Shown piece by piece: positions 368 to 42,992 of a stretch of DNA of 64,000 bases. The notes below the pieces were generated by a model, which had not been told where the DNA came from, did no database searches, and was given only the letters and a program-made list of their open reading frames with translations. Position 1 is the first letter of the stretch; each line of letters begins with the position of its first letter. Location: positions 186,001 to 250,000 of the IMG/VR virus record IMGVR_UViG_3300042545_001134. One strand, 5' to 3'. Both the position numbers and the translations under genes were made by a program.

Positions 368-2533
368 TTAGAAGTCTAATCTTACTCCAAACACTTGTGT
401 GCCAATTCTTTTAATTGGTTTTGCGGTTTTAGCAATCACCATAACTTCCTTATTACTGTTCAATAAGGCAACTTCAGTAATTCTTTTATCCGCACCTGAT
501 GGGTAAGTAGGATTTTGTGTTGTTGTGAACTGAGATGATGGTAAGTTTACCATAAATGTCATTCTTTCTATGTCAGTTGCTCTAACCAATCTAATACTTC
601 CCGGAAATGGTTGTTCATCACCAAATTGTGGTAATCCAGGTTCGGTTAATGAATCAGATTCATTGGGAACTAAACCTAAATAACTTTCAATATCATATAA
701 TGTACCACTTGTATACATTGCGTTTGTAACTTTCATTGAAACATTAGTGATATCTAATGGGTCAATTAATTGTCCAACCGTATGTCCCGAAATGTGTGAT
801 GTGTAATTGATTCTTGTCCAGTTATCATGAATCGGTAGTTCACCTGTATCAGTAACTTGTACCAAAATTTGGAATTGGTTTGCGATGAATCCTGATGACG
901 CTCCTGAACACACGTTTGTGTTATTCATGAATGGGAAACTATCTTCTCCAAATTTAACAAATAATTGAGATGGGTTTTTTAAACATTCGTCACCATCAAA
1001 TACTTCAATTTTAGAATAATAATTACATGGTAATCCATTTAATTGTGTGTCACCTGTGTAATTGAACATGTATGTTACCCAAATAGTTTGTCCTGTTGTT
1101 GAACCTGTGAAGAATGATTCTCCTGTAGATGTGTCACTCGGAATTAAACTAATTTTAGGTGCTGGTAATGTGTATTTTCTATTTGATTTATAGTCAAGTA
1201 CCGCAATAAGTTCTTGGTCGTCAAAAACAATTGTTTTGTTGTTAACGTAAATCTTACCAACTTTATAACCTTGTTCATCTAACAAATATCTGAACAATAA
1301 TAATTGAGTTGGGTTAATACTTGATTTCATATAGTAATCGGTAGTATCCATTGTAAATAACGCACCAACTGTGGTTCCAGTATTTCTGTGATATTGAACA
1401 AACGGAATATAAACCTCAAAATATTCTAAATCGGTAATTGTGTTCTCATCGGCATCTTCCAATAACGCATCACCTTCAACATTATTTGTTGAGATGTAAT
1501 CATCGTACTTATAAAATCTTTCAGGGTCATTAACTAAATCTCCCAATTCTGAATAATGAATAATCGCAATTGTTCTTTGTTCTTCGGGAGAAACAATAAT
1601 TTTCTCGTCAAATGAATTGTAATAAGATGTAACACCCGTAATTGTTCCACCTGTACTGTTTACCCATGTTTGACCACTTGTTGTGGTATAACCTAAAAAT
1701 TGTTTTGTTGATACGTGTTTGTTACTTGTGAAACCAGTTAGATTTTCATCTAAACCATTAACATCAAATCCGGTTGGTTTTTTATCCCATACAATATTCA
1801 TTGTCCACGAATTTAATTGTTGTGATGGGTCGATATCATTTGGACTACAATACGGACTAATTCCCGCATCTATAGGATATTCATTTTCACACGAATTACA
1901 AATAACCTGAACATTACCCGAACATCCTGAGAAGTTAGGTAAATTTCTATCCACCGTGATTGTGTTTCCACTTACACTGATTACTTGATAAATTAAACTT
2001 GACGCTTGTCCTGTGATAACAGGATAGTTAGGGTCGGTACCTCCGAACTGATTGAAAACCACCGTAATATATTCACAGTCACTAAAACTTGAACCTGTTG
2101 GTACAATTATACTTGTTGTTCCTGTAATTCCCGATAATGGGATTGATTGTGTTGTACATTGGATTGTTGTTCCTGTACATGCAACACTATCATATTCTTC
2201 GTAATTACTAACGAATCCCGCAGGTCCCATTACATTTCTTAAAATGTCAGTTACTGACATATCAATAGGAATACCATACGTTGTTGAGGTATCAGATGAA
2301 TCTATTTTATATGGGTATTTTACCCCACCTTCTTTATCAAATGGTGAGAATACTGATTGGTGTTGAACACCACCTAAACCCGTTAATCCTGTGAATGGAT
2401 TTGTGTAATCAAACTCAGAATCCCCAATTTGGAAATATGATATTACAAAATTTCCTTTGGCAATAGAATTTCTTCCCTTTTGGGTTATTCTTGCTGATAG
2501 GAACTCCGAATTATTTTTACTTAGAAAACTCAT
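368..2533 (-). CDS. baseplate / tail-fibre attachment structural protein (tail-collar-like N- and C-terminal motifs around a large insertion)
   Basis: 721 aa. N-term ITQKGRNSIAKG..ISYFQIGD and C-term ITEVALLN...VIAK resemble the two halves of the P2 gpH-type tail-collar (DUF3751-like) domain. Late motif at 2538-2545. Confidence 0.5.
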   Translation of the reverse strand: MSFLSKNNSEFLSARITQKGRNSIAKGNFVISYFQIGDSEFDYTNPFTGLTGLGGVQHQSVFSPFDKEGGVKYPYKIDSSDTSTTYGIPIDMSVTDILRNVMGPAGFVSNYEEYDSVACTGTTIQCTTQSIPLSGITGTTSIIVPTGSSFSDCEYITVVFNQFGGTDPNYPVITGQASSLIYQVISVSGNTITVDRNLPNFSGCSGNVQVICNSCENEYPIDAGISPYCSPNDIDPSQQLNSWTMNIVWDKKPTGFDVNGLDENLTGFTSNKHVSTKQFLGYTTTSGQTWVNSTGGTITGVTSYYNSFDEKIIVSPEEQRTIAIIHYSELGDLVNDPERFYKYDDYISTNNVEGDALLEDADENTITDLEYFEVYIPFVQYHRNTGTTVGALFTMDTTDYYMKSSINPTQLLLFRYLLDEQGYKVGKIYVNNKTIVFDDQELIAVLDYKSNRKYTLPAPKISLIPSDTSTGESFFTGSTTGQTIWVTYMFNYTGDTQLNGLPCNYYSKIEVFDGDECLKNPSQLFVKFGEDSFPFMNNTNVCSGASSGFIANQFQILVQVTDTGELPIHDNWTRINYTSHISGHTVGQLIDPLDITNVSMKVTNAMYTSGTLYDIESYLGLVPNESDSLTEPGLPQFGDEQPFPGSIRLVRATDIERMTFMVNLPSSQFTTTQNPTYPSGADKRITEVALLNSNKEVMVIAKTAKPIKRIGTQVFGVRLDF

Positions 2534-2561: not shown

Positions 2562-3461
2562 TTAACATCCACTACCTTTTAAACAATCTATATATAACAC
2601 CCCACTAAGTACATAATATAAATTCGGATATGAAGCGCCGGGATTAATTGCGTTGGTATCTGGGAAATATGTTGTCAGTCCCGCATCCGAGAAAACGATT
2701 GTTGAATCAACAAACGAATCACTTAAACCCATGTAAATTGTTGAGTTACCAATATTACCATTTAATTGGCAGGTCCCACCATTACATAGAGTATCACCTG
2801 TTTGAACTGTAAATTGTATATTAGATGATGTTGGTGTTGGGGTTGGGGTTATAGTTGAGGTGGTTGTAATAAATCCACCTTCAAGTGTACATCCAGTAGT
2901 AACTAAACTTATTGTTACTAAAGTACAATCTGTTGTTGGTAAAGAGCAAGAACATAAATCTAACACCGTTCCCATAGTGAATTGGGGGGTAGGTAATCCA
3001 AAATAATCACCCCGTTCGGACATCGGTGTGTTTGTGTTACAATCAGTCCAATTTATAAATTCTCCACAATAAGAAATATATGTAATTCTATACGTGTTAC
3101 ATTCACATACGGAAGATGTTGGTGTCGAGGTGGATGTTACCGTAGGAGTACTAGTTCCCGTAGGAGTTACTGTTGGGGTGGGCGTTGGTGTCGATACTAT
3201 ATCTCCACAACATTCATCTAAATTAACTCTAAATGTATTTGAACAACACCCTTCACAGTCAATTTTAACAAAAACTTCCATTAATGTTGCAGACAAACCT
3301 GTTAAGGTACATGTTGTCCCAGTTATATTTACACAATTAGTTGTCCCCGTAACCGTAGAGTCCGTTAGACCCGTATAAACAGTACAATTTGTGTAATCTG
3401 AACCCGAATTTAAATTAATTGTAACACCTTTTGGGGTTACTGTATCTGGAGTACATGCCAT
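2562..3461 (-). CDS. PT-linker, Cys-rich putative virion appendage/adhesin protein
   Basis: 299 aa. N-terminal beta domain, TPTPT linkers and Cys-rich modules; structural gene cluster; upstream TATTTATC. Confidence 0.55.
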   Translation of the reverse strand: MACTPDTVTPKGVTINLNSGSDYTNCTVYTGLTDSTVTGTTNCVNITGTTCTLTGLSATLMEVFVKIDCEGCCSNTFRVNLDECCGDIVSTPTPTPTVTPTGTSTPTVTSTSTPTSSVCECNTYRITYISYCGEFINWTDCNTNTPMSERGDYFGLPTPQFTMGTVLDLCSCSLPTTDCTLVTISLVTTGCTLEGGFITTTSTITPTPTPTSSNIQFTVQTGDTLCNGGTCQLNGNIGNSTIYMGLSDSFVDSTIVFSDAGLTTYFPDTNAINPGASYPNLYYVLSGVLYIDCLKGSGC

Positions 3462-3511
3462 TTAGTATCTAATATATCAGATAAATATTAGAAAGTAAAT
3501 TTTAAATGGTA

Positions 3512-4951
3512 TTAACTCATACAATCATTATCCACTGTACAGTTACTACCAGGTATTATCGTTGCAGTACTATACGACGGAGCACTTTGGATTCCTAATT
3601 TTAAAATGTAAATACTATTAATTACTTGTACACACGCAACATATGTTGCAGGAGAATTGTATTGGGTTATAATTTCCGTTCCGTCACATTTAATCATACT
3701 AACATAAACAATACCGTCATCTGATGCAATTAAATCTCTTTCATCGATGTAAATGTTCGCGCATTGACACTCAGTTAAACACGAGTATATTTCACCGTCA
3801 AATACACATGCGTTTCCTGTATTTGTAATTATTAAATTAGGTTGGTCTAAATTGACTATATTACCACAAAGATTTATGGTTGTTGAGCCCGAAATTGAGT
3901 CTACAAATAACACACCGTTACAATCTTCATATGTTACCGAACATCCTTCCGGATTCGAACATTCAACAGTGTAACAATTACATGGTCTTGATTCTGTAGG
4001 TGTAGGTGTTGATTGTTCCGTTGTCGTCGCCGTTGGAGTACTAGTTCCCGTAGGAGTTGCTGTAGGTGTATTAGTTCCTGTAGGAGTTAAAGTAGGTGTA
4101 CTAGTTCCTGTTGGAGTTAAAGTAGGGGTCGGTGTTATTGTTGGTGTCGCCGTAGGGGTTAATGTAGGTGTTGGTGTTGGTTCACCCGTTACAATACAAT
4201 CACCATCTATAGTACATGGGTTTAATGTATTAGTATATGTTGAAAACTCAATCGGAACGATATCAGACTCTTCCGGTCCATTATATCTATACCAATCTGT
4301 TATTGAGGATATGCAATATCCTGAAAATCCCCCAACACCACTAAATCCTATACTTTGAGGTGTTAAACTACAATCTAAATATTGAAGTATTGGCCCTCCG
4401 TATTCTCCAAATTCACGTTCATCAATATTGAATTCATAACAATAACATCCTTCTGCCGGTGTTGGTGTTATGGTACTGGTTCCTGTTGGAGTTCCTGTAG
4501 GGGTTGCCGTAGGTGTACTAGTTCCTGTGGGGGTCACAGTGGGAGTTGGGGTTATTGTTGGTGTTGGTGTAACATCAGTACTAGTTGTTGTGGGTGTTGG
4601 TGTTACCGTTGGTGTGTTAGTCCCCGTGGGGGTTGGTGTTGGGATTATTTGTGAAATACAATCGTCACATCTTAAATCAACAAAAACCAATTGATAACCA
4701 CCTTGTAATTTAGGTGTTGACGTTGGCACCGAGTTAATGTGTCCATCACAATGTTCAATAAATAAATAAACATTATCATATGAACTATCAACATTCAAAC
4801 TTAAAGTGTATCCCGAAACGGGTACGTTAACGTCTTCCACATAATCAGCGTCATCAATGTCGTGAGTTATTCCAGTATAAACTGAATAACTTTCACATGG
4901 TGTTGTACCATTAAAATTGGAAACTGTTATTTCATAACTTGAAGTTGGCAT
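3512..4951 (-). CDS. PT-linker, Cys-rich putative virion appendage/adhesin protein (three Cys modules)
   Basis: 479 aa. Two PT tracts of about 65-70 aa separate CYCY..YLDC, CNCY..YEDC and CQCA..MIKC modules. Confidence 0.55.
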   Translation of the reverse strand: MPTSSYEITVSNFNGTTPCESYSVYTGITHDIDDADYVEDVNVPVSGYTLSLNVDSSYDNVYLFIEHCDGHINSVPTSTPKLQGGYQLVFVDLRCDDCISQIIPTPTPTGTNTPTVTPTPTTTSTDVTPTPTITPTPTVTPTGTSTPTATPTGTPTGTSTITPTPAEGCYCYEFNIDEREFGEYGGPILQYLDCSLTPQSIGFSGVGGFSGYCISSITDWYRYNGPEESDIVPIEFSTYTNTLNPCTIDGDCIVTGEPTPTPTLTPTATPTITPTPTLTPTGTSTPTLTPTGTNTPTATPTGTSTPTATTTEQSTPTPTESRPCNCYTVECSNPEGCSVTYEDCNGVLFVDSISGSTTINLCGNIVNLDQPNLIITNTGNACVFDGEIYSCLTECQCANIYIDERDLIASDDGIVYVSMIKCDGTEIITQYNSPATYVACVQVINSIYILKLGIQSAPSYSTATIIPGSNCTVDNDCMS

Positions 4952-4986
4952 CTATATTAAATATGAATCTATTTTTTATTATTTTT

Positions 4987-6678
4987 TTAACAACAGCAAC
5001 CCACAGGTATACTTGTTCCACAACTTCCGCTTATTATGTCGTCCTCGGGACCGACGGTTTCACTTATTATTTTCCAAGCACAATTAGGATTTGGTAAACT
5101 ACTCATATTTACAAATGTCCCTATTGATAACGAAACAAGGGACTTCGCTATGTACGTTGGGCCGCTCGCTGCGCCCGTATCACAGTTACTTACTGCCCTA
5201 ATAAAATAGTAAAATTCCATAGGTGTTGAAGTTGGAGTTATTGTTGGTGTTGAAGTTGGGGTTGTTGTTATAGTTCCCGTTGATGTTGGAGTTATTGTTG
5301 GGGTTGTCGTTGATGTAGGTGTTACCGTTGGGGTTGGTGTTGCTCCAATTGAACCACATATCTCAACAATTTTAAATGTTGTTGTTTTGGGGTCGGACAC
5401 ATAAATTGTGTTTGTTGGTGGATAAAATACCACATCAAATGGTGTTGAATCCGGTATTGTTATTGTATCTGATAGTGTACCCGTTGATACATCAATAACT
5501 TTAACAACTCCACCATCAAAAATTGGGATGTATAATTTATTGTTTACACTGTTATATACAGAGTTATAAATCGTCAACCCAAGTGAAATACTATATGAAT
5601 TTGTAACACTATTTGTTGAACAATCGATTACATCATAACCCCCTGTATGGATTACAAATAATTGATTAGTTGATGATTTATATGATAATGAACGAACCGT
5701 TCCACTGACCGCAATACTCCCAACTATTGTATATGATATCGTAGAAAATCTTTGAACAGTTGTACCCGTACCCGGAAGATAAAGAGTATCGTTAATTGAG
5801 TTATAACTTAATGTATAACTCGTACTATTAATTGGTAAACCAGTAACTTGTGTAATAAATGTTTCAGAAGAACCATCTATTACCGATATTTCACCTGAAC
5901 TCGTTCCAGTATATGAGGAAAGATACATTACATTATCTCCCGAATTAAATTCAAACGCCTTTGGATTTGTTGGTCCATTTCCTAAATATGTTTCGGTTTG
6001 TGGAATTGTTGTATTTTGCATACGTATAGTGCCACCTACGTCAACCCCATAAACTTTATTTGTTACGGTATTCATACCTATAATAGATGTGTTTACACTG
6101 GTCGTAAATGTCCCAAATATGGATTGTGTTGATGAGTTTGGTATAACTCTACTAATGTAATATGCCGCACCAACGTTAAGTGCATAAATTTCATTATTAT
6201 TTGGGTTATACACCATACCGGAAGGTCTGTTATACACTGATGGACTGTTCAATGTTCTTACAATATCGTCACTACAAGTAGTTGATGTCGGGGTAGTTGT
6301 TATAGTTCCCGTTGATGTTGATGTTGGGGTTGTCGTTATGGTTGGAGTTGGAGTTATCGTTGGTGTAGGTGTTGATTGGTTTTCACATGTCACATCGATA
6401 CTAAAACAGATTGTGTCATAACATGGGAACGCCTTACTATCGTGAGTAAAGATATTTTGAACAATATATCTACCCGTTGCATTGTCCGTCATTTTAATCC
6501 AATACTGAGTATCGAATGTTAAACCTGAAATTGTTATTTCAGTTGTTGACGGAGTATATGAACCCAATAACGTAAAAGTTGAATTAGTTTCAACGGGGTA
6601 TGGATTATTACCCGACTTATAACGAATCGTGTAATTACCATTTGAGATTATATTATATATTCTTACGTTTAGTCCCAT
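4987..6678 (-). CDS. FN3-like N-domain + PT linker + YVTN/YncE-like beta-propeller + PT linker + Cys-rich C-domain
   Basis: 563 aa. TISGLTFDTQYWIKM is FN3-like. Repeats of about 42 aa (YNPNNNEIY, FNSGDNVMY, YNSINDTLY, YNSVNNKLY, with VIDG/VIDC/VIDV) are typical of YVTN propeller blades. Confidence 0.65.
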   Translation of the reverse strand: MGLNVRIYNIISNGNYTIRYKSGNNPYPVETNSTFTLLGSYTPSTTEITISGLTFDTQYWIKMTDNATGRYIVQNIFTHDSKAFPCYDTICFSIDVTCENQSTPTPTITPTPTITTTPTSTSTGTITTTPTSTTCSDDIVRTLNSPSVYNRPSGMVYNPNNNEIYALNVGAAYYISRVIPNSSTQSIFGTFTTSVNTSIIGMNTVTNKVYGVDVGGTIRMQNTTIPQTETYLGNGPTNPKAFEFNSGDNVMYLSSYTGTSSGEISVIDGSSETFITQVTGLPINSTSYTLSYNSINDTLYLPGTGTTVQRFSTISYTIVGSIAVSGTVRSLSYKSSTNQLFVIHTGGYDVIDCSTNSVTNSYSISLGLTIYNSVYNSVNNKLYIPIFDGGVVKVIDVSTGTLSDTITIPDSTPFDVVFYPPTNTIYVSDPKTTTFKIVEICGSIGATPTPTVTPTSTTTPTITPTSTGTITTTPTSTPTITPTSTPMEFYYFIRAVSNCDTGAASGPTYIAKSLVSLSIGTFVNMSSLPNPNCAWKIISETVGPEDDIISGSCGTSIPVGCCC

Positions 6679-6682
6679 TTAA

Positions 6683-7708
6683 TTATAATTGACAATTTTC
6701 TTGACATGCATTCGTACACACGCCATGACCTGTTGTTCCGTAAAGTATTAAGTTAGGTCCACCACTTATAGTGTTACCTGTAATTTTAAAAATACTTCCA
6801 GTACACGCCCCAACATTTTCAATGTAGAATCTACCAAATACAGGAGACGTTGATGTTGGCATCTCAACAATTACGTTATCATTTATCATTGTACATCCTG
6901 TTGCTACTCCTCCTGAATCGTATTCACATGACCATTCTTCCGCCTCATATGCGGATGTTCCTATTGGTTCAGGTGTGAATGTAGGTGTAACAGTTATTGT
7001 TGGTGTTGATGTTGGTGTATTAGTACCCGTTGGTGTTGATGTTGGTGTATTAGTACCTGTCGGTGTTGGAGTTTCCATTGGTGTAATCGTTTCACATTCC
7101 CCTAGTTGTGTTATGTTACCCTCACCTCCGGTTTGAAATACTGAACCATTTTGAGCACAAACAACTATTGCACTTGTTACTGTTGCAGAATTTGGTGTTC
7201 CATCACACTCTAACCATTCAACATCAATAGATGCGGCACCTTCGATGTTATAACCATAACAAAATAGGATTGGTGTTTCTGTTGGTGTTACCACTGTTGG
7301 TGTGTTAGTACTTGTTGGTGTCGTAGTAGGTGTTGTTGTCGGCGTTTCAGTTGGGGTATTAGTTCCTGTTGGTGTGGGGGTAATGGTTTCCGTTGGTGTT
7401 CCCGTAGGAGTACTAGTTCCCGTTGGTGTTACTGTAGGAGTACTAGTTCCCGTTGGTGTTACAGTAGGTGTTGGTGTGGTAGAACTAATAACATAATTAA
7501 CTTCATTTGTACATAATCCAACACTAGCAACTGTTCCACTTACAATTGTGTATGGTGTGGTGTCAACAGTATAACCCGTTAATAATTGAGATTTTGTGAT
7601 ACCTGTTGCTAAAAGAACAACATCAAACGTATCGGTTAATCCCGAAATATTAAATGGTCCCGCATCTGTTGCGGTATATCCTGATGGTATTGTAAATGTT
7701 ATAAACAT
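6683..7708 (-). CDS. PT-linker, Cys-rich putative virion appendage protein
   Basis: 341 aa with the same architecture as its neighbours; TATTTATA at 7728-7735. Confidence 0.55.
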   Translation of the reverse strand: MFITFTIPSGYTATDAGPFNISGLTDTFDVVLLATGITKSQLLTGYTVDTTPYTIVSGTVASVGLCTNEVNYVISSTTPTPTVTPTGTSTPTVTPTGTSTPTGTPTETITPTPTGTNTPTETPTTTPTTTPTSTNTPTVVTPTETPILFCYGYNIEGAASIDVEWLECDGTPNSATVTSAIVVCAQNGSVFQTGGEGNITQLGECETITPMETPTPTGTNTPTSTPTGTNTPTSTPTITVTPTFTPEPIGTSAYEAEEWSCEYDSGGVATGCTMINDNVIVEMPTSTSPVFGRFYIENVGACTGSIFKITGNTISGGPNLILYGTTGHGVCTNACQENCQL

Positions 7709-7750
7709 ATGTCTTTTCTTGTTATTTTATAAATACTTTTATTCTTTATT

Positions 7751-10700
7751 TTATCTATCACAATCCTCGGGTTTATTACATGGTACTAAACTGTTTACAT
7801 AACTAGAAGTTGGAGCTGTCAGTTGAACGTCACCTTGGAAGTAAACCAATGCAGGTGAGTAACGAGTATCTGCACTCCAAATACATATGTTATATATTCC
7901 TGCAACACCAAACATCGTTAACCTTGGTTCATTACCATAACCGCACTCAAAATATTTAAAGAATACTTTTCCATTTGCACTTGGGTAGTATGCCCCATTT
8001 ATGGTAACAGGGTTGTTGTTACCTGTCGCATTATCTATATCCTCTTGACTAATTGTTATTTCATGACACGTACAAATTAATGGTGCCGGGTTATATGGTG
8101 GACAAGGGGTGCAGTCATAACACTGTACACCTGTTGGTACCGCAATGTTATTAGTGTCAGTAAGTAATTCGTCAATACATAATGTGCCCGTTTCTCCCGG
8201 GTTGAAATACTGTTCTTGCGTTCCACCTGTACAGTTAATATAATAAATCCAACCACCCGTATATGATGGTCCTATGTTGTAACATTCAACCGCCAAGGTT
8301 GCTGTAGGGGTTGCTGTTGGTGTTACAGTAGGAGTTGGTGTTCCTGTAGGGGTTGCAGTACTAGTTGGTGTTGCAGTACTGGTTGGTGTTACTGTCGGTG
8401 TTGGTGTTCCTGTAGGGGTTGCCGTACTAGTTGGTGTTACTGTCGGTGTAGGTGTTATGCATGGTCCACAATCTGAACATGTGTTATAATATTGATATAT
8501 TGGTGCACATCCTTCATTTGTTGACCCTACGCTTGTTATTGTGTAACAATATCCATAGTAATTAATAATCTGACCAACGATTGGTAAAGTATATTCTGTT
8601 GAGCATCCCACCCCAATATCAAGTTTATTAACTGTAGGATTTTCAGGACAACAAGAGTCTAAATTAACATTCACATATAACCCCGGATTCTCAATCAAAC
8701 AATCTTCACATGTGGTAAAATCAAATAAAGTGGTTCCAGGATAATATCCATCTGAACCATTACCACCAATGTCGGTTAAATGGTAACAACATCCAAAAAT
8801 ACTTGTTGTTAAATTAGTATCTATTGCATATGCACCAGCATCTACCGTTACATACTTAAATTGACTTACATCACAACATGATGTAAGAATAAGATTAATA
8901 GGTGGTGTTGATGTTGGCGTTTCCGTAGGTGTCTCTGTTGGAGTTGCTGTTGGCGTCTCTGTTGGTGTTGCAGTTCCTGTTGGAGTTGCTGTTCCTGTTG
9001 GAGTTGCTGTTCCTGTTGGAGTTGCTGTTGGCGTCTCTGTTGGTGTTGCAGTTCCTGTTGGAGTTGCTGTTCCTGTTGGAGTTGCTGTTCCTGTTGGAGT
9101 TGCTGTTCCTGTTGGAGTTGCGGTTGGTGTTTCCGTAGGAGTTGCAGTTGGCGTCGCTGTCGGCGTTTCCGTAGGTGTCTCTGTTGGAGTTGCTGTTGGC
9201 GTCTCTGTTGGTGTTGCAGTTCCTGTTGGAGTTGCTGTTCCTGTTGGAGTTGCGGTTGGTGTTTCCGTAGGAGTTGCAGTTGGCGTCGCTGTCGGCGTTT
9301 CCGTAGGTGTTGGGGTTATAGTTGGTGTCGCAGTTGGTGTTTCCGTAGGAGTTGCTGTCGGAGTTGCAGTTCCCGTAGGAGTTGCGGTTGGCGTTTCCGT
9401 AGGAGTTGCGGTAGGTGTTGCAGTTCCTGTAGGGGTTATAGTTGGTGTTTCCGTAGGAGTTGCAGTAGGTGTACTAGTTCCTGTCGGTGTCGATGTCGGC
9501 GTTTCTGTATTAGTTGGTGTAATGGTTCCTGTTGGGGTTGCTGTTCCTGTCGGAGTTGCAGTAGGTGTGCTAGTTGGTGTTTCCGTAGGAGTTGCAGTTC
9601 CCGTAGGGGTTGCTGTTGGCGTCTCAGTAGGAGTTGCTGTTCCCGTAGGAGTTGCTGTTCCTGTAGGAGTTGCTGTTGGCGTTTCCGTTGGTGTCTCTGT
9701 TGGCGTTTCCGTAGGAGTTGCAGTAGGTGTACTAGTTCCTGTCGGTGTCGCGGTTGGCGTTTCCGTAGGTGTACTAGTTCCTGTCGGAGTTGCCGTAGGA
9801 GTTTCAGTCGGAGTTGCTGTTGGTGTACTAGTTCCCGTAGGAGTTGCCGTAGGTGTACTAGTTGGTGTTTCTGTATTAGTTGGTGTAATGGTTCCTGTTG
9901 GGGTTGCTGTTGGTGTTTCCGTAGGAGTACTAGTTCCGGTAGGAGTTGCCGTTCCTGTAGGAGTTGATGTTGGCGTTTCCGTATTAGTTGGGGTCGCTGT
10001 TGGCGTTTCCGTTGGAGTTGGTGTACTAGTTCCTGTTGGAGTTGCCGTTGGTGTCTCTGTTGGAGTATTGGTTCCTGTTGGTGTTACTGTCGGCGTCTCA
10101 GTAGGTGTATTAGTTGCGGTTCCCGTAGGTGTTTCCGTAGGAGTATTAGTTCCTGTAGGAGTTGCTGTCGGCGTCTCTGTGCTAGTTCCAGTGGGTGTTA
10201 TTGTAGGTGTTGCGGTACTAGTTGGTGTTGGTGTTGTTTGAACATAAATTACCTCAACACATGAACATACAGGTTGGACAGAATTAACGGTAAAACTACT
10301 AACACATTCTCCCTGTTGTAAAACAGGATTCAAATTGAACGAATGTGTATGGTCGTTGTATGCGATTGTTTCTGTTCCATTATATACCGTACCTAAATCC
10401 CCATATGCGGTTCCTGATACCACATAATCACAAATGGCATTTGCGTTACCCGTTAAATTAGGATTATCAAATAATTTCAAACTAAAATTAGTACATCCAA
10501 GTAATTTTACCTCCAAGTATTGAGTTGTAACCAAAGTACATGTTGTAGTTGGTGTTACAGTTGGGGTATCAGTTGGTGACTGTGTAATCGTAGGAGTCAC
10601 TGTTGGTGTTTCCGTAGGAGTTGCCGTTCCTGTAGGTGTAATAGTTGGTGTATCAGTAATAGTCGGCGTACTGGTTCCTGTCGGAGTTGCCGTTGGCGTT

Positions 10701-13700
10701 TCCGTAGGAGTTTCAGTTGGTGTTTCAGTCGGAGTTGCCGTTGGCGTACTAGTCGGCGTTGCCGTTGGTGTCTCAGTAGGGGTTTCAGTCGGAGTTGCCG
10801 TTTGTGTTGGCGTTTCCGTTGGTGTAATAGTCGGCGTTCCTGTTGGTGTTTCCGTAGGAGTTGCTGTTGATGTCTCTGTCGGAGTATTAGTTCCTGTTGG
10901 TGTTTCCGTAGGAGTACTAGTTGGCGTTTCCGTAGGAGTTGCTGTTGGAGTACTAGTTGGAGTTGCTGTTCCTGTTGGGGTAATTGTTGGCGTTTCCGTA
11001 TTAGTCGGTGTACTAGTTGGCGTCTCTGTAGGAGTACTGGTTCCTGTTGGAGTACTAGTTGGCGTTTCTGTGGGTGTCGCAGTGCCTGTAGGAGTTGATG
11101 TTCCCGTTGGTGTTGTAGTTGGTGTATCCGTAGGAGTTGCCGTTGGCGTTTCCGTAGGAGTTGCTGTTGGAGTTGCGGTTGGCGTTTCCGTAGGAGTCTC
11201 TGTTGGTGTACTAGTTCCCGTAGGTGTTATTGTTGGTGTATCAGTAATAGTTGGTGTACTGGTTCCTGTCGGCGTTTCAGTCGGAGTTGTGGTTGGTGTC
11301 TCAGTAGGAGTTGCAGTAGGTGTTGCTGTTCCTGTAGGAGTTACTGTCGGCGTAATTGTTGGCGTTTCCGTTGCAGTAGGAGTACTAGTTGGTGTCTCTG
11401 TCGGAGTTGCTGTTGGTGTTACAGTGCTAGTTGGGGTTACCGTACTAGTTGGTGTATTTGTTACCGTTCCTGTGGGAGTTTCCGTTGGTGTTACAGTAGG
11501 TGTACTAGTTGATGTTGGCGTTGGTGTTGTCTCGTTAAATATAACATCAACATCGATATCAAAATTACAATCTAATATGTTCACATCGATATCAAAATCA
11601 CAATCTATACACTCACCAAAAACCGAAATCTCTAATTCTTCATTTGTTGGTTCAGTTGGACAATGTTCAGGGTCAATATAATATTGACCTAATTTAAAGT
11701 CAAGACCCGGATGAACACTATATGTGTGTTTCATTAGTAATTGTTCATTTGAGTTACCATTGAATACTACTAAGAAACTATCATCACCTAATGGTGTGCC
11801 GTCCTTCTCAACATTTAAATTAAAATATAGGTTTGATTCACAGTAATTTAAATCGACAGCAATCACTTCGATTGGGTACCCATATTGATTAATTAAATAA
11901 TCTCCATGATTATATAACTCTTTTGGGTGGTCACAGCATGGTTCAATGAAATCTATTGGTTTACTTTGTAATTCTTCAGGAAATCTATCATCAAAGTGAT
12001 AGTTACCATTTGTTACATTTCCAAAATTCTCAATAAACTTATTTGTATAAACTCTAAGTTGGGTTGTTGGTAAAACTTCAAATACTTCATAAATTCCATT
12101 ATTGGTTAAACCCGTAATGACACTCTTCTTAACAGAAGCAAGACAATCTTTATCGGTAACTTTTAATTTAACATATTCATATGTGAACGAATAACCATTT
12201 TCAGGTGCGTCTTGGAATTGTTGATTTGATAATTGGTTACAATCTTTGTATTCAGCAGATAAAATGTAATCATCAACAAGAAGGTCACAAACACTTTTTT
12301 TAATTATATCTCCGTTTGAAATAAAAGTTTCAACATCAATACTTGTGGTACCGCTGTTAATTGTTATTCCCGTTGTGACAACTAAAACATCCGTATCACA
12401 TTTTAAACCATAATTGAAATTACTTCTATATTCAACTTTAGGGTGAATTGTATGTCCCGTATAATTGTCACAGAATGTGGCACCTGATATGGATGATATA
12501 CTATTTCCTGAAGTTCCTTGGAAACCTATTAGTTCGAACAATTCAACGTGACTTTTACCACTTGGTAATGGACATGGGTCATGTTCAACTTTGGCCTGTA
12601 AACCTTCTATTCTAAATTTAACTTCTTTATTTGCACCGTCAATAATGTCAAAATCGATAATTTCATTTTGAGTTATTCCAGTTAATTTAAAGACACAGTC
12701 TTCACCCGGTACTCTCTCAATGTATATGTCCGCATTTTGGTTATAACCAGACACACAGTTTGCGTAAATGTAAAATGGCCATTCTCCACTAGGATTTTGA
12801 ACGCCTGATTTGTGTCCAATAACCTCAATGTATAAATCGGAAACTAATAAACAATCCACCGGTTCATTACAATAGTATTGACCATCTCCTCTTACCTCGA
12901 CACTCATTTCAACAACATTCTTTGTTGTCTCATAATCCGCCTCAAATCGATAATCAAAATAATCTTTTACCGAACAATCTCCAATACCGTACTTAATTGA
13001 AGAGAATCTAATCATCTCTTCACCATTTACATCAGTAAACAGTTCATAACTAACCATTGGTACTTCTTCAGTTGTATATGTTTGACCTGTTGCACCTAAG
13101 AATGGGTCATAGTCTTCATATCCCGCAGTATATCTTGTTATAGTGATAACACTAATAAGTTCAGATAATGCACTTAACCATAATTGTTTAATCTTAACAA
13201 TATCAGGTTCTAAATAATCTTTATAATCACAAATAAGAGCCAAATTAACGGCATCATTACTTGTTAAATCCGTACAGTCATCCATTGGGAATGGATTGTA
13301 CAATTGTGCACTATTTGTTGTGTTAGTTGTCCCACTAACAACCACTGTCATTGCTGATGTTAAATCACTAAATGACGGACCACCGTAAACAATACCATCA
13401 ATTTCAATTGTGGGGTAATATGTTACACCAGTTAAATTGATTAACCCCCTGAAGTTACTTTCTTCACCAAGTAAGGTTTCTAAATCTTCCTCAATTGCGG
13501 TTTCGAAATCGGGATATAAATTTTCAACAAACTCCATTGGTTGGCAATCGAATATGTAAGGGTATTTTGGTCTTCCAAATAGATTATTTTCTATTAGATT
13601 ACCACCCGTCCACAATGTTGTTGCCGGAACTAATTGTTCAATTAGTTGGACCCAATATGGTGTGATTTTATCAACAAATTCATTTACATCGATGAAACCA

Positions 13701-15862
13701 TAAGGACTAAATCCAACTTGGGAAATATAATCTCTATAAATGTCTTCGAGAACAATATAATTTTTCTTATATCTAATCGTATTAGAATTTTTTATTGTAC
13801 CATGTATAAATTTATCTACGAATTCGGCAAATGTTACACCTGTTTGTGGTACCAAATTATTATTAGTACCAAAAGATAGATTTAAGTTTCTACCTCTTCT
13901 ATATATGTCATAATCAATACCTTTTGATGGGGAGATATGAACATTAATGTTTTTTCTGTTTAAAATTAATAATGAATCATCTTCAACAGAATGTGTTTTC
14001 TTGTTATCGATTTCTGTTTTAAGACCATAACCCGTATCTAACCCCGGTAACGTTCTAAAAACATCAAAATAATTTTCACCATAAGTGTATGGTTTGTTTT
14101 TTGTTTTGATTGTTTTTGTTAATCCAGTTAGAATTGAGTTTTCAGTATCCAATATCGTTGGTGTACGGTGGTCTAACGTAATGTCGTACCAACCTGAACC
14201 CTTTTCAAAGAATATTTCGTCCGTTTGGTTGAATGCCCTTCTTGGTAATAAGGTATCGGGGTCAACAGGGTAACCATCTCTATCGAAATTTGTTGTTCCC
14301 GTTACTGTTGATGTTTCGTATGTGTAACCTGTAAGGTTAAATGTCGCAGTTGTGTATGTTTTTTCACCTTGGATGACATCGTAGATGTCTTGTTCCAAAT
14401 CAAAACTTCCCGGAATAGATTCAACTCGGTAAATGTACTCGTCAAGTTTTATTAATGGTTCAGGTGCACCTAAGAATTTTAAGAAAAACTCAATACCCGC
14501 TCTTGTACCTTTTGATTTAAAGATAAACGCCAAGTTTACTAAAAGTCTTCTATAGAATTCATATTCGGCATCAATAAGGTTGAATCCTTTGGAAACACCC
14601 CCATAACTTGAGTCTTGTCTTGAATATAAAACATCCTCTAATGATTTTTCATCAAATAAATTAATTGACGATAAACCTAAATTTTGTGATAAGTTTTTTA
14701 ATAATACGTCGGGTAAATTGTTGATACCATCATAACTTACATTTCTCATGTAAGCAATGTTGTCAATGTATTTTTTTACCTTATCGAAACTTTGTCCATA
14801 TAATTGGAAAACACTTTCCGCCTTTTGGTCTTCAGTGTCAAATTCAAATAATTGTGGAGACGCTAAGAATCTAACCATTAAGTTAGATTTGTAGTCATCT
14901 ATTTGGTCTGAGATATCACTCAGATTTTCAACATATGATTCGTAGTCAAGTCCTGCAATTCTGATGTTCCAATTATCTGACGATAACGGCCAAGTATATT
15001 CAACGTTTTGTAATGTGGTTCTTGAACCATCACTGTTATCCATTGGTATTTGGAAACTTGCAGTGTAAATAGGATTTGTTTCTCTATTTAATAACGCCTC
15101 TTCCAAATCATCCAAACCATTGAAGAACTCTTCAACGATACCGTCATTTGGTCTAAGTAAAAAATTAGATGAATATGTTGTAGACCCACTAAGTGGATTA
15201 CCTAAGACAACAAACTTAATTTCGTTTGCCGAATTCGGTTGTGTGTATTCAATGACAGGGTATGTGTTACCACTAAAAACCGCAACGTACTTACTATATG
15301 ATGAGTATAAGTTTCTTATCTCGTTTTCAGTTGTAGGTTTAATTGCACTGTTTGGTTCAATAAGTGAAACATCAAATGGGTTAAAGAGTTTTGCTCTTTC
15401 AACATAGAATGTTGTTCTATTAAGATTAATATCATAAGACGCATTGAATGCGGTATATGAATTACTTCCAATGGGTCCACCACCCTCAACACTTAAACCA
15501 CCGGGAAACTTATTGATAATACGAGTAACCGATACTAAAATTCTGTCTTTTAATGAACCGAATAAAGATTTGTCGGCGTTTTTCTTATTACTTTTAAAAC
15601 GAATTGAGGATTTCTTTTCCTGTGCTGTTTTATTTTGGGTAACAACAGCAGATGTTTCTTCTTTTAAATTATCTAAAGTTAAAAAATCTGAAAATGGGTT
15701 GTTTTTGAAATTTTTTGCATCCTTTGAAGGTATCGTTTTATCAATATCAAAACTGGTATTAGTCAGCGCGGAACTTCCGTTGGTGATTTGTCTACCAACT
15801 AAGTTATCGCTAAATGTTTGCCCACCGTTCGCTGCCTGACTCGGTACCTTTGTTGTTGCCAT
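7751..15862 (-). CDS. giant baseplate wedge protein (gp7 / P2 gpI-like N-terminal part) fused to about 830 aa of Pro-Thr repeats and Cys-rich distal domains
   Basis: 2703 aa. [30 protein letters not shown] matches the KGT..A/GIE motif of gpI/gp7-type wedge proteins; lies downstream of gp25- and gp6-like genes. Confidence 0.6.
8298..8456 (-). repeat. coding Pro-Thr repeat tract 3 (about 53 aa)
   Basis: [17 protein letters not shown] repeats in the 2703-aa ORF. Confidence 0.9.
8900..10237 (-). repeat. coding Pro-Thr repeat tract 2 (about 446 aa; 12- and 18-nt units encoding [14 protein letters not shown])
   Basis: Seen directly; includes near-exact tandem 18-mers gttcctgttggagttgct at about 9051-9122. 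Confidence 0.95.
10541..11530 (-). repeat. coding Pro-Thr repeat tract 1 (about 330 aa)
   Basis: Seen directly in the 2703-aa ORF. Confidence 0.95.
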
Positions 15863-16779
15863 TATACAGTAATCGTATCAAAATTTAAGGTTTCATCAAT
15901 ATCTGTTCTCTCTTCACGAACTTCGTATAATGTTTCATTAAACTCGTCCTTAACTTCGTAAAGATTGTATTGTCTATAGATGTTATTGTTATTATCGTAT
16001 ATCGTGTAGATACCTTGAGAAATCGCCTTACTTTGATTACCGTATAATGCGTGTGCTAACGTAGTTGCGTCATGTTCAACCATTTCAATCTCAACAGTTG
16101 TTGGGTTGAAGTAGGTGTTAGATAAAATAATTTTTTGTGATGGAGTACCAATGAATGGAACCGTGTTTGGTTTATTCGAAGGTGCCGAAGATGGTGTTAC
16201 CGTTAAGAACATCAAGTTCGTAGCCTGTTCACTGTATTGATATCTAATAGACTTTTGTGAAGTACTAGTTAAGTTTGATACAATTGGTGTACAATAGAAA
16301 GACGACGTAACGATTCTATAAAAGTTAGACACCTTCTTATTGTCTGATGAGTTAATATACTCAACTCTATAACCAACCAACCCTTGTGGGGTAAATTTAT
16401 TTCTATCAGCCGATGGTACATTACTTAAATCGATAACCAATCCTCTAACGGATGGTAACGACGCTAAAATACCACAATCAGTAATTGTTGTGCGAATTTG
16501 TTTAGGTCTGATGTGTAAAGTATAGATACCTAAATCAGAAAAATCTGCAGCGGTTAATTTTAAATTGTACAAACCACCCAAAATTTCCACATCGGGAGCA
16601 CTCGTATCGTCTGTTGTATCCGTATTATGGAATACAGGTGTTAGTACATCATTAGTACTAAGTCTTTTTAAAGTCGCAGTTGCATCACTCGTTCTTCCCG
16701 ATACATAGTGGAAGTAAATTTCCACATCTTCTGGAGAAACGTCCGCGGGTCTTATAATTCCGTAACTTCCTACTGCCAT
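15862..16779 (-). CDS. putative baseplate-associated structural protein
   Basis: 305 aa. TAATG-coupled to the downstream gene; late motif at 16791-16798. Confidence 0.5.
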   Translation of the reverse strand: MAVGSYGIIRPADVSPEDVEIYFHYVSGRTSDATATLKRLSTNDVLTPVFHNTDTTDDTSAPDVEILGGLYNLKLTAADFSDLGIYTLHIRPKQIRTTITDCGILASLPSVRGLVIDLSNVPSADRNKFTPQGLVGYRVEYINSSDNKKVSNFYRIVTSSFYCTPIVSNLTSTSQKSIRYQYSEQATNLMFLTVTPSSAPSNKPNTVPFIGTPSQKIILSNTYFNPTTVEIEMVEHDATTLAHALYGNQSKAISQGIYTIYDNNNNIYRQYNLYEVKDEFNETLYEVREERTDIDETLNFDTITV

Positions 16780-24449: not shown

Positions 24450-26282
24450 TTAGAAGGTAGTCGAACCTAAAGTTTTAACCCTGATTTTAATATCTTTATT
24501 AGGGAATCTAATTTGGAAAATCTGGTTTGACTTCATATATACAGTCATATCAGACTGTTGTATTTCTTTTGTTGATGTGTCAACATATGATTGTGCAACC
24601 TCCGCAGATGAATATTCACCACCTGTTAAGTTGTAGGCGCGTACATCAACTACGTTAATCACTCCCGTTACTTGTCCTATTAATCTATTTAAATCACCAA
24701 CAAATAGTGGGTCACCCATTTTTCGTTTCTCGATGGCAAAATAATCAACAATATCTTCAATTGTTGTCTTAATAATTTCTGTTTGATTACCGTTTTTATC
24801 TATTACCAAATCAATCTCAAGTCCCATGTCAATTACCTGTCCACTTTCAATATCAACAAAGTCATTAATCATTCTGTATTCAGATAGATAATTTAAGATG
24901 TTATCTTTTAAAGTCGTTGAAATGGTGTTTGAAAGATTACCATTTTCATCATATGACAATAACTTGATTTTAACCTTGTTGTCTTCTTCCATGACGTTTA
25001 CCTTCGCAGGTGCTCCGTAAGTCGAAGGCATGGTCTCTATTAACGATTTATAGTCATTTAAGGTAACCGCTCTGTTCTGTGCCGCAAAATTGTACGCAAT
25101 CATATTTCTAACTTCTTCAATTCCCGGTAAATCAGAACCACCGATTGCTGGTGTTATATTCGTTACAATAAGTGATTGGGTTACTTGTGTATTGGTTGCT
25201 CCGTTTGGACCTGTTATAACAAAATCAACATCATCAATACTTGTAATAACATTAACTCCAAGGTTTGTGTCTTTACCTCCACCAATTCTATATTTGATGA
25301 ATAATGTGGTACCAATTTTTGGTAACGCACCTAAAGACATGTTATTAAGATAGGTTCCCAAGTTAACTTTAAGATTACCATCGATGTAATTGTCTAAGTT
25401 ATCCATTGGGTCGACATTACCCGAACCAAAAGTTACCGAGAAATACCCCTCAGGAGTGTATTCAGTAATGAATTTATTGGCAACACTAATATAATTTCCA
25501 GCCTTAAAGTTATCTCTATCTGATGCCGTGGTCGGGTCTTCTACGAAAACCTTATCTTGTACTAATGATTTAACTTCGTACCACTTATTAGTTGCCTCTA
25601 AGAATTCTGAGTTAGTTGGATTACCAGCAAATGAGGTACCATCTTTATGAATTATTGATGTTATACCCAAAACGTTTTGTTCAGGTAGGTAAAGTTTAAA
25701 GAAAGGTTTTTGGTCAAGTTCCGTGATTACTTTTCTGAAAATTCTTGTTACACCGTTAACTACCGCTTCTCTTTTTAAGATTGTATATGAAATCAATCTA
25801 TTATTACCATCAAAATTTGGTATTTTTAACCTATTTGGTTCACCTTTACTATTGAAAGGGTTGGAAAAATCAATATCTTCAATTGTTTCGAATACTTGTC
25901 CACCGCCCGATATTTGGGCTCCACCTTTGATTGTACCTAAATAACGTTCATCCTCTTTGTCACCCCTAATGGGTACATTGATTGAGAAATCACACAATGC
26001 AACCGATGGTCTATTACCCGGTAGTCTAACACCATATGTTTTCGCAATATGATAAAGAGATTGTCTTTGTTGTGCAAAGTCCAACATAGTTTCTTGCCAC
26101 ACTCTATCGATGTGGAAGTGAAGGTTATCTGTAACCGCAGCATTTAAGTCCAATAGAACTGAATATATTGATGCGTCGTTGGTATTCTTTACTAAGTCTG
26201 GATAGTATTCTTTCGTTAAGTTAACTAACTCCTGTCTTAATCCCGCAAAGTCTCTTGTTGCGTATGATATCTTTTTAGCCAT
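24450..26282 (-). CDS. baseplate wedge subunit (T4 gp6 / baseplate J-like)
   Basis: 610 aa. YATRDFAGLRQEL, ETMLDFAQQRQSLYHIAKTYG and AQNRAVTLNDYKS motifs; follows the gp25-like gene. Confidence 0.85.
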   Translation of the reverse strand: MAKKISYATRDFAGLRQELVNLTKEYYPDLVKNTNDASIYSVLLDLNAAVTDNLHFHIDRVWQETMLDFAQQRQSLYHIAKTYGVRLPGNRPSVALCDFSINVPIRGDKEDERYLGTIKGGAQISGGGQVFETIEDIDFSNPFNSKGEPNRLKIPNFDGNNRLISYTILKREAVVNGVTRIFRKVITELDQKPFFKLYLPEQNVLGITSIIHKDGTSFAGNPTNSEFLEATNKWYEVKSLVQDKVFVEDPTTASDRDNFKAGNYISVANKFITEYTPEGYFSVTFGSGNVDPMDNLDNYIDGNLKVNLGTYLNNMSLGALPKIGTTLFIKYRIGGGKDTNLGVNVITSIDDVDFVITGPNGATNTQVTQSLIVTNITPAIGGSDLPGIEEVRNMIAYNFAAQNRAVTLNDYKSLIETMPSTYGAPAKVNVMEEDNKVKIKLLSYDENGNLSNTISTTLKDNILNYLSEYRMINDFVDIESGQVIDMGLEIDLVIDKNGNQTEIIKTTIEDIVDYFAIEKRKMGDPLFVGDLNRLIGQVTGVINVVDVRAYNLTGGEYSSAEVAQSYVDTSTKEIQQSDMTVYMKSNQIFQIRFPNKDIKIRVKTLGSTTF

Positions 26283-42679: not shown

Positions 42680-42992
42680 AATATAAATTATACAATTCTA
42701 CACTTCTTTTGTAATCTTGTAAAGTCGTAGTTAAAGGAAATGGTACTCTAATTAACGAATTGTTCGGAATTTCAAACTCTAAACTACCGGCCAATGGATT
42801 TGCCATTAAAATAACCCAACCAAAAACGGGTGAATTATAATATTCTTGAGAGATTTTATCCAATCTATCTTTTCCTTTCTTATAGAATGTATACTTGTCG
42901 GTTCCTTTAATCGGAATCTCAATACCCGGAACAATTTTAAATTCACTGTCCTCAATGAAAAACTGATATCTGTTAAAATAATCCCTTGCCAT
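42669..42992 (-). CDS. LysM-like baseplate protein (T4 gp53 / P2 gpX-like)
   Basis: DRLDKISQEYYNSPVFGWVILMANP...IRVP. Confidence 0.8.
   Translation of the reverse strand: MARDYFNRYQFFIEDSEFKIVPGIEIPIKGTDKYTFYKKGKDRLDKISQEYYNSPVFGWVILMANPLAGSLEFEIPNNSLIRVPFPLTTTLQDYKRSVELYNLYYGE

Follow-up and report, generated by a model that had tools for sequence, protein, structure and literature searches.

The distal fibres of T-even phages and the branched fibre sets of jumbo phages, for example Klebsiella phage phiKp24, reportedly combine a conserved N-terminal attachment part with exchangeable C-terminal binding domains. Phage binding proteins can be diversified by diversity-generating retroelements or by invertible tail-fibre segments. 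Pro-Thr linkers, for their part, occur in cellulases and cellulosomal scaffoldins, where they separate independently folding modules. Here we describe an array of five genes that resembles each of these systems in part. It lies in a 64,000-nucleotide stretch of DNA (the window), which corresponds to bases 186001-250000 of a single 310,691-bp IMG/VR virus record (IMGVR_UViG_3300042545_001134) rated 93% complete. Each of the five proteins has an N-terminal domain followed by Pro-Thr (PT) linkers that set apart small Cys-rich modules or a propeller. On balance, the array is probably a hypervariable, linker-delimited cassette of adhesins or receptor-binding proteins at the baseplate of a clade of lake jumbo phages, and it carries a new family of Cys-rich domains.

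The five open reading frames (ORFs) occupy positions 2562-15862 of the window, all on the minus strand and 4-50 nt apart, and encode proteins of 299, 479, 563, 341 and 2703 amino acids (aa), referred to here as g299, g479, g563, g341 and g2703 (Table 1). A sliding-window script identified eleven PT linker regions of 16-449 aa, which cut the five proteins into 16 non-linker modules; in the giant protein, 802 of the 2703 residues fell within PT windows. The Cys content ranged from 11 to 53 per protein. Three contigs from other metagenomes (L009, L010 and L013) were 100% identical to the locus over 16.6-24.3 kb, a stretch taking in all of the small-gene linkers and most of the giant arrays, and two of them (L009 and L013) terminated at window positions 9144 and 9234, within PT linker 2 of g2703. 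A preliminary description of this DNA had proposed five adjacent genes with one layout, and the ORFs, the segmentation and the identical contigs all agree with it. The array is not the complete set of PT-linker proteins in the genome, as two more are encoded outside the window. One (genome 252384-256688, minus strand; L099:88-4389) is 1434 aa long and contains 26 Cys; its seven PT linkers are accompanied by a Laminin_G_3 (ConA-like lectin) domain (E 1.3e-11). The other (genome 174828-176051, minus strand; L100) is 407 aa long and lacks cysteine; it has membrane helices near its N-terminus and a PT linker of 60 aa. PT linkers are thus not limited to the baseplate cassette.

Searches with the giant N-domain and with g721, the conserved gene downstream of the array, yielded about 85 IMG/VR loci at 40-100% identity, and 1339 modules were clustered. 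The backbone of these loci is fixed: the upstream genes, the giant N-domain and the small N-domain families c10, c5, c15 and c16 follow one another in order, and then comes g721. Behind the linkers all changes, with 111 distinct layouts of PT genes across the related loci, so that module order is not invariant. The N-domains are syntenic and 30-70% identical among relatives and the distal modules are mostly unrelated, that is, the proteins have a conserved, presumed attachment end and a variable, exchangeable one. In this the array is like the receptor-binding protein and tail-fibre cassettes of phages, which also lie beside baseplate genes, have conserved and syntenic N-terminal parts and hypervariable distal parts, are mosaic and supply several binding proteins per genome. 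It differs from them in its long PT spacers, which predict monomeric flexible tethers and not trimeric shafts, and in its distal modules, which belong to three kinds: beta-sandwiches that are small and Cys-rich, a propeller, or repeats of adhesin type. Pfam and PHROG detected no fibre, spike or chaperone families in the five proteins, and homology to fibre, spike or baseplate proteins was not found in Pfam, PHROG, NCBIfam or the PDB, save for a match to PHROG 15511 (unknown function), which was rejected as a relative since it aligns to a PT linker only.

The preliminary description had also held that modules are reassorted among N-domains and genes, and the relatives confirm this. At least 11 different modules occur behind domain c5. 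Four different domains, three of them N-domains of families c5, c10 and c16, precede the propeller found in g563. The Cys-rich module of g341 (type A, see below) was found behind c15 in loci L019 and L071, and the module of g479 turns up both within a giant protein and, in L093, behind c16. Genes are also divided differently: the last two modules of the giant protein form a separate 405-aa gene in L084, whose C-terminal end is 45% identical to the C-terminal module of g2703, and in several relatives c15 makes up a whole protein of 116 aa. Module M2 of g2703 is akin to the c28 family of the relatives' giant proteins (35% identity to gene 3130 of L084, E 4e-7).

Local alignments between loci begin and end at linker borders. 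The 950-bp module c77 stands at the end of the last cassette gene in L084 and at the end of the c10 gene in L093. Its DNA is 73.6% identical between the two loci, equal to the identity of their syntenic parts, and in both the 5' edge of the homology falls inside PT-coding DNA, which makes it a relocated module. The flanks diverge far less than the cassette; between L074 and L073, for example, they are 91% identical, and the inside is a patchy 70-85%. Exchange at or near linkers on an evolutionary scale is thus well supported. Contigs of relatives (L011, L012, L014-L017, L021, L022 and others) commonly end at or inside the first PT array, which indicates that short-read assemblies of this clade break at the putative host-recognition genes.

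Homologues of the giant protein form at least 132 clusters worldwide. Among the 120 listed, 105 have PT linkers, which begin at median residue 1402. Across the clusters, Pfam domains occur only in the variable C-terminal parts and never in the N-terminal part. These domains include F5/8 type C (discoidin), LRR_5, DUF285, Laminin_G_3 and a DUF5122 propeller, among others. In relatives, a small anchor from a further family (numbered c10 in the first clustering) is followed by a 1510-aa module made of cadherin domains (E 3e-54) and SprB repeats (E 2e-39), and another module has weak PA14 similarity. The proposal that the proteins are adhesin-like is upheld by these domains, which sit in relatives at the positions of the window's distal modules, and they support a binding role for the distal positions, a statement that does not extend to the type-A module itself. 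SprB, cadherin-like, discoidin and LamG domains recall the surface adhesins of Bacteroidota, as does the PT-linked LamG module encoded elsewhere in the same genome. Unlike those adhesins, the five proteins of the window are without these Pfam domains, and their own modules are type A, a YVTN propeller and orphans. A literature search found no paper on PT-linked phage adhesins or on SprB repeats in phages.

The same comparison bears on the host. A 248-kb contig (L107, CBFHJJ010000001.1), probably of a jumbo phage and encoding a homologue of the giant N-domain (42% identical) was binned in a metagenome-assembled genome (MAG) of Flavobacteriaceae. Taken with the nearest isolates and with the SprB repeats, this bin is a weak pointer to Bacteroidota, and the host is probably a member of the Flavobacteriaceae or of another group of that phylum. 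Two short matches were also seen in MAGs of DPANN archaea (L108 and L109; Woesearchaeota and Pacearchaeota), a placement that is probably due to mis-binning.

The preliminary description had listed a Cys-rich module, type A, as recurring at least seven times. All 14 of the strings quoted for the seven copies were found at matching positions, but the literal pattern had no match in the window proteins and pairwise BLAST among the 16 window modules gave nothing below E 0.002 in a tiny database, so that the modules stayed unlinked by these means. Profiles linked them. In a leave-one-out test with hidden Markov models (HMMs), 4-5 of the seven seeds, which had been cut after the fact, outscored 1000 shuffled sequences. 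More tellingly, an iterative profile built from the seven seeds and run against 765 non-redundant modules of relatives and an equal number of shuffled decoys gained 25 and then 39 domains, against 0-1 decoys. The resulting alignment of 39 sequences (A1) shows a CxC-aromatic start, a hydrophobic strand closing with Y-x-[DE]-C-x-G and a last invariant Cys; the domain is about 85 residues long, and some copies run on for about 30 residues to end in PC-x(4-6)-[DE]C. With A1 as input, AlphaFold2 modelled residues 167-253 of g479 as a compact, seven-strand, all-beta domain (pLDDT 93.1, pTM 0.79). On the strength of the profile and the model, type A is a genuine domain family with a predicted all-beta, Cys-rich sandwich fold. 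A second proposed module, type B, could not be recovered, as neither its literal pattern nor a loosened one matched anything.

Type A has no relative in Pfam, the PDB or AFDB and is a previously undescribed domain. None of the 39 members matched Pfam, a profile search of the PDB gave no sequence match, and Foldseek with the model returned nothing significant in the PDB, AFDB clusters or BFVD. A wide VIA search, independent of Foldseek, gave a best Z of 4.3, which is below the usual noise; the shape neighbours at that level were viral penton jelly-rolls, C2 domains and a fucose lectin. Shape matches to the model came only from viral clusters of the ESM Atlas (TM 0.60-0.64), and feature searches of the Atlas with the C-terminal parts of g479 and g2703 gave only viral clusters below a reliable score. 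Membership of type A in PF25729, the C-terminal domain of the crAss muzzle protein, was considered and rejected: the sole link is a TM of 0.64 to an Atlas cluster whose members carry PF25729, and 0 of the 39 members match the family even at E 1.

When the type-A HMM was searched exhaustively against 1.84 billion representative proteins, 123 contained the domain at E <= 1e-3. All were metagenomic, 53 had PT linkers and there were up to 12 tandem copies per protein. A 1214-aa protein on a distant Logan contig (L096:1728-5372) has 91 Cys and 12 tandem type-A modules on linkers of poly-Thr instead of Pro-Thr, and sits three genes upstream of a homologue of g721. The family crosses phage lineages, as an 89.6-kb ENA contig (L097, k141_863850) that bears a crAss-type capsid gene also codes for a protein of 1219 aa from a cluster whose representative holds seven type-A stretches.

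A profile of the g563 middle domain, built from six homologues, matched the YVTN propeller of the Methanosarcina surface layer (PDB 1L0Q, E 9.6e-17) and YncE (3VGZ, E 1.5e-4), in agreement with the preliminary description, which had placed a propeller in the array; here it is a PT-tethered module of a phage protein. The score against the NCBIfam YncE model (NF052280, E 6.9e-5) is far under the equivalog cut-off, so that the propeller belongs to the fold family without being an orthologue. The N-domains of the small proteins are 75-100 aa long, and those of g479, g341 and g299 are separate conserved families. Only that of g563 was modelled (AlphaFold2, pLDDT 82), giving a sandwich that appears to be FN3-like: its top 50 VIA matches were mostly FN3 (Z 6.1-6.8), Foldseek gave probabilities of 0.96-0.99 at E 0.05 or worse, and the FN3 domain of lambda gpJ (8IYK) was among the structural matches. 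Pfam gave only sub-threshold matches for this family (fn3_2 in 4 of 26 members, Pur_ac_phosph_N in 5 of 26).

For the N-domain of the giant protein, no match was found in Pfam, PHROG or the PDB, nor among 50,697 phage records; a weak match was seen to a protein of Microcystis phage Mel-JY01 encoded three genes after that phage's gp6-like gene. Nothing but its position speaks for a designation as baseplate wedge, and the domain is presumed to be a structural or attachment part.

The mucin- or cellulosome-like character proposed for the proteins holds for the linkers, which are PT-rich and form dense Ser/Thr/Pro arrays, of the same composition and with the same module-separating logic as those of cellulases and scaffoldins; an FN3-like domain is present as well. 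It does not hold beyond them: a Pfam scan of the five proteins found no cohesin, dockerin, carbohydrate-binding module or catalytic domain, and without cohesin or dockerin the cellulosome analogy stops at the linkers. The proteins also differ from cellulases and scaffoldins in being phage-encoded and in having no secretion signal evident in their N-termini as read, no predictor having been run.

The genome is of jumbo myovirus type, encoding a sheath, a gp6-type wedge, a ribonucleotide reductase, a DnaB-like helicase and a UvsX-like recombinase. The array lies in the tail and baseplate block, its five genes continuing on the same strand beside conserved neighbours (Table 1). The window had no match at the DNA level among the 50,697 phage records, and tblastn against them gave no relatives other than remote ones of the baseplate and sheath. 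Even the closest isolates are far removed, at 27-37% protein identity: Mel-JY01, the Flavobacterium phages 'immuto' and a 484-kb uncultured phage. Two further very large ORFs (36836-42679 and 42992-47800, minus strand; 1947 and 1602 aa), both without a Pfam match, sit between the sheath and the replication genes. A promoter and terminator scan showed no enrichment, and terminator-like signals on the plus strand were discarded as artefacts of the PT repeats. Plus-strand ORFs at 3094-3378, 4382-4654, 9522-10241 and 11070-11681 were likewise rejected as genes, their V-G-V repeats being the antisense of PT-coding DNA. At window positions 8000-12000 the GC content is 0.43-0.46, with a GC skew of about +0.25, compared with a GC content of 0.33-0.35 elsewhere; this rise and strong skew are due to the Thr and Pro codons of the giant gene's linkers.

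Table 1. Features of the cassette and its surroundings. Positions refer to the window unless marked as genome.
Feature	Position	Strand	Remarks
g721	368..2533	-	conserved gene bounding the variable cassette downstream; 40-100% identity, 25 loci
g299	2562..3461	-	299 aa
g299 N-domain c16	3201-3461	-	Cys-rich
g299 PT linkers	3141-3200; 2820-2867	-	
g299 type-A module	2931-3116	-	
g299 C module	2565-2819	-	orphan
g479	3512..4951	-	479 aa
g479 N-domain c15	4649-4951	-	
g479 PT linkers	4454-4648; 4031-4192	-	
g479 type-A module with cap	4193-4453	-	AlphaFold2 pLDDT 93.1
g479 C module	3845-3991; 3608-3778	-	two type-A domains
g563	4987..6678	-	563 aa
g563 N-domain c5	6382-6678	-	FN3-like (model)
g563 PT linkers	6316-6381; 5215-5349	-	
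g563 propeller	5350-6315	-	YVTN, 7-blade
g563 C module	4990-5214	-	homologue in L093, E 4.8e-21
g341	6683..7708	-	341 aa
g341 N-domain c10	7490-7708	-	
g341 PT linkers	7268-7489; 6965-7093	-	
g341 type-A module	7124-7267	-	
g341 C module	6686-6964	-	orphan
g2703	7751..15862	-	giant protein; N-domain, then three PT arrays parting M1, M2 and the C-terminal double type-A module
g2703 N-domain	11534..15862	-	conserved, aa 1-1443; 41-100% identity in 61 IMG/VR loci
g2703 PT linker 1	10541..11533	-	~331 aa
g2703 module M1	10241..10540	-	orphan; 100 aa, 6 Cys
g2703 PT linker 2	8894..10240	-	~449 aa
g2703 module M2	8468..8893	-	142 aa, 13 Cys; internal duplication
g2703 PT linker 3	8297..8467	-	
g2703 C-terminal module	7754..8296	-	181 aa; two type-A domains (8156-8296, 7865-8083) and PC-x5-DC cap
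g305	15862..16779	-	conserved gene bounding the cassette upstream, in baseplate-side block reaching the gp6-like gene
gp6-like baseplate wedge	24450-26282		PHROG 6, E 9e-20
Tail sheath	51555-54392		
P4H-type oxygenase and glycosyltransferase sites	genome 74845-75156 (L098:1444-2316, -); 70778-71254; 108-114 kb; 265.6 kb		

On the reading that we favour, the array, which lies at the distal end of the baseplate gene block, would be the hypervariable attachment cassette of an uncultured, lake-water clade of jumbo myoviruses. Docking to the baseplate or tail would most likely be the task of the giant 1440-aa N-domain and the small N-terminal beta domains. The PT arrays would act as extended, non-folding spacers, and about 800 spacer residues at about 0.3 nm each might give the giant protein a reach of up to ~250 nm. 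Binding would fall to the distal modules, which are here seven type-A copies, one YVTN propeller and a number of Cys-rich orphans. Diversity comes about over evolutionary time, as entire modules appear, disappear, change place and fuse or split where linkers border them, perhaps with the help of short microhomologies in the PT DNA; there would be no dedicated diversity generator, and within a population the cassette is stable.

Several points weigh against this reading. Neither the giant N-domain nor the small ones are connected with a known baseplate or fibre protein by any match in PHROG, Pfam or the PDB. The c10 and c16 N-domains lie internally in fused genes of some relatives, so that the term 'anchor' is an assumption. 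Shared modules are just 30-67% identical between contexts, which implies that most exchanges are old. The tethers that the PT linkers imply are monomeric, whereas the fibres of characterised phages are trimeric, and no structural match backs a binding function for type A. Finally, Cys-rich modules made in the reducing cytoplasm would need oxidation after lysis; a search of the genome for an Erv1 sulfhydryl oxidase found none, with a control that was equally silent and a result that is therefore uninformative.

A different role, which we think unlikely but worth stating, is that the proteins decorate the virion and stick to its surroundings instead of recognising the primary receptor. Lectin-like and FN3-like modules on long tethers would keep the particle attached to polysaccharide, mucilage, aggregates or cell sheaths, and other fibres would trigger infection. 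Models that resemble this are the Hoc-type Ig-like decoration of phages and the idea of adherence to mucus. The FN3-like model of the g563 N-domain would fit, as would the lectin and adhesin types among the relatives' modules, the predicted monomeric and flexible tethers, which differ from rigid trimeric fibres, and the second PT-linked LamG protein encoded far from the baseplate block. The resemblance to Hoc-type decoration is limited, as the g563 scores are moderate (Z <7, Foldseek E 0.05 or worse) and the FN3-like domain is the conserved end and not the variable one. Decoration also sits poorly with a cassette that directly follows the conserved baseplate-side genes in the baseplate block, and with a conserved front and a variable tip under extreme turnover, which is the classic signature of host specificity.

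The favoured role as a receptor-binding cassette could also be extended, in a version that we offer only tentatively and consider rather improbable. Lake phages of several lineages, among them the present jumbo myovirus clade and at least one crAss-like phage, would share a pool of modules, type A and others, all small and rich in disulfides, that are exchanged as cassettes bounded by DNA coding for Pro-Thr or poly-Thr. A brush of monomeric tethers of 50-250 nm, possibly hydroxylated or glycosylated, would then be a host-capture organelle unlike trimeric fibres and spikes, and the phages' own oxygenase and glycosyltransferases would make the linkers into extensin- or mucin-like rods. The genome does encode a P4H-type 2OG-Fe(II) oxygenase (PF13640, E 1.5e-12) and has four GT2 and one or two GT1 glycosyltransferase matches (Table 1); hydroxylation or glycosylation of the PT arrays by these enzymes is conceivable and purely speculative.

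Much harder to sustain is the idea that the proteins never join the virion and are released at lysis, or act on the infected cell, as decoys, aggregation or biofilm-binding factors or superinfection-exclusion factors. Incorporation into virions is indeed something we infer, and a PT linker also occurs in the membrane protein encoded elsewhere in the genome, but the five N-termini as read start directly with a conserved beta domain (no signal-peptide predictor having been run), the genes share their strand and tight 4-50 nt spacing with the baseplate genes, and throughout the clade the N-domains show conservation and synteny.

The preliminary description had further proposed that the modules are shuffled through near-identical PT-coding DNA, without a reverse transcriptase or an invertase. 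The second half of this stands: no match to reverse transcriptase (RVT_1) was found in the 93%-complete genome, in a search whose control worked, nor was a serine invertase or recombinase found in it. The first half stands in part, since linker-bounded exchange has occurred over evolution but the PT DNA is degenerate and the locus invariant. TRF matches within it are 61-95%, with synonymous codons mixed; linkers of different genes share exact words of at most 9-24 nt, and within the giant gene the longest is 29 nt. The array is comparable with diversity-generating retroelements and invertible segments in its outcome, varied binding proteins; it differs in that it varies by replacement of whole modules and not by codon mutagenesis or inversion, and in that variation was not seen within populations. 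All of the sampled cassette words were present in at least 12 lake-water metagenome runs from 2016-2024, contigs from four lake runs of lower share matched exactly wherever modules were covered, and thirteen contigs of one related lineage had one common layout. Apparent recombinant 'joints' in reads and contigs over 2562-7708 were rejected, as they have sides of 20-28 nt inside PT DNA with less than 95% likeness. They coincide with depth spikes over the linkers; short, internal to PT DNA and placed at such spikes, they are explained by cross-mapping of other PT sequences.

The idea of a diversity device, programmed or working at high frequency, in which PT-repeat recombination, a retroelement or an invertase would create new module orders within populations, is therefore highly improbable and largely refuted. 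Repetitive PT DNA does lie on both sides of every module, and lake metagenomes hold many other PT-flanked sequences that cross-map onto the linkers, but neither the degenerate repeats, with exact words between genes of no more than 24 nt, nor the absence of both enzymes from the genome, nor a cassette that is identical in independent assemblies favours such a device. Rapid or programmed shuffling is not supported; the invariance over assemblies and years of lake samples points to slow evolutionary shuffling, for which microhomology-assisted illegitimate recombination is a plausible mechanism. Least credible of all is an assembly artefact, in which PT arrays and module order would be chimeras of short-read repeat assembly: many related contigs do break at PT arrays, but the three contigs from other metagenomes run unchanged through the small-gene linkers for up to 24.3 kb and the reading frames are intact.

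The building principle of PT-tethered, presumably monomeric modules is unusual among phage host-recognition cassettes. If the proteins are on the virion, they would represent a second way of building phage host recognition, with small binding domains on long unstructured spacers instead of trimeric fibres. Type A is a candidate for a new carbohydrate- or protein-binding fold, and the PT arrays explain why short-read assemblies of such phage genomes fragment exactly at the putative host-range genes. With its 111 layouts and at least 132 clusters of giant proteins, the clade is a natural library for the study of domain shuffling and for the engineering of binders.

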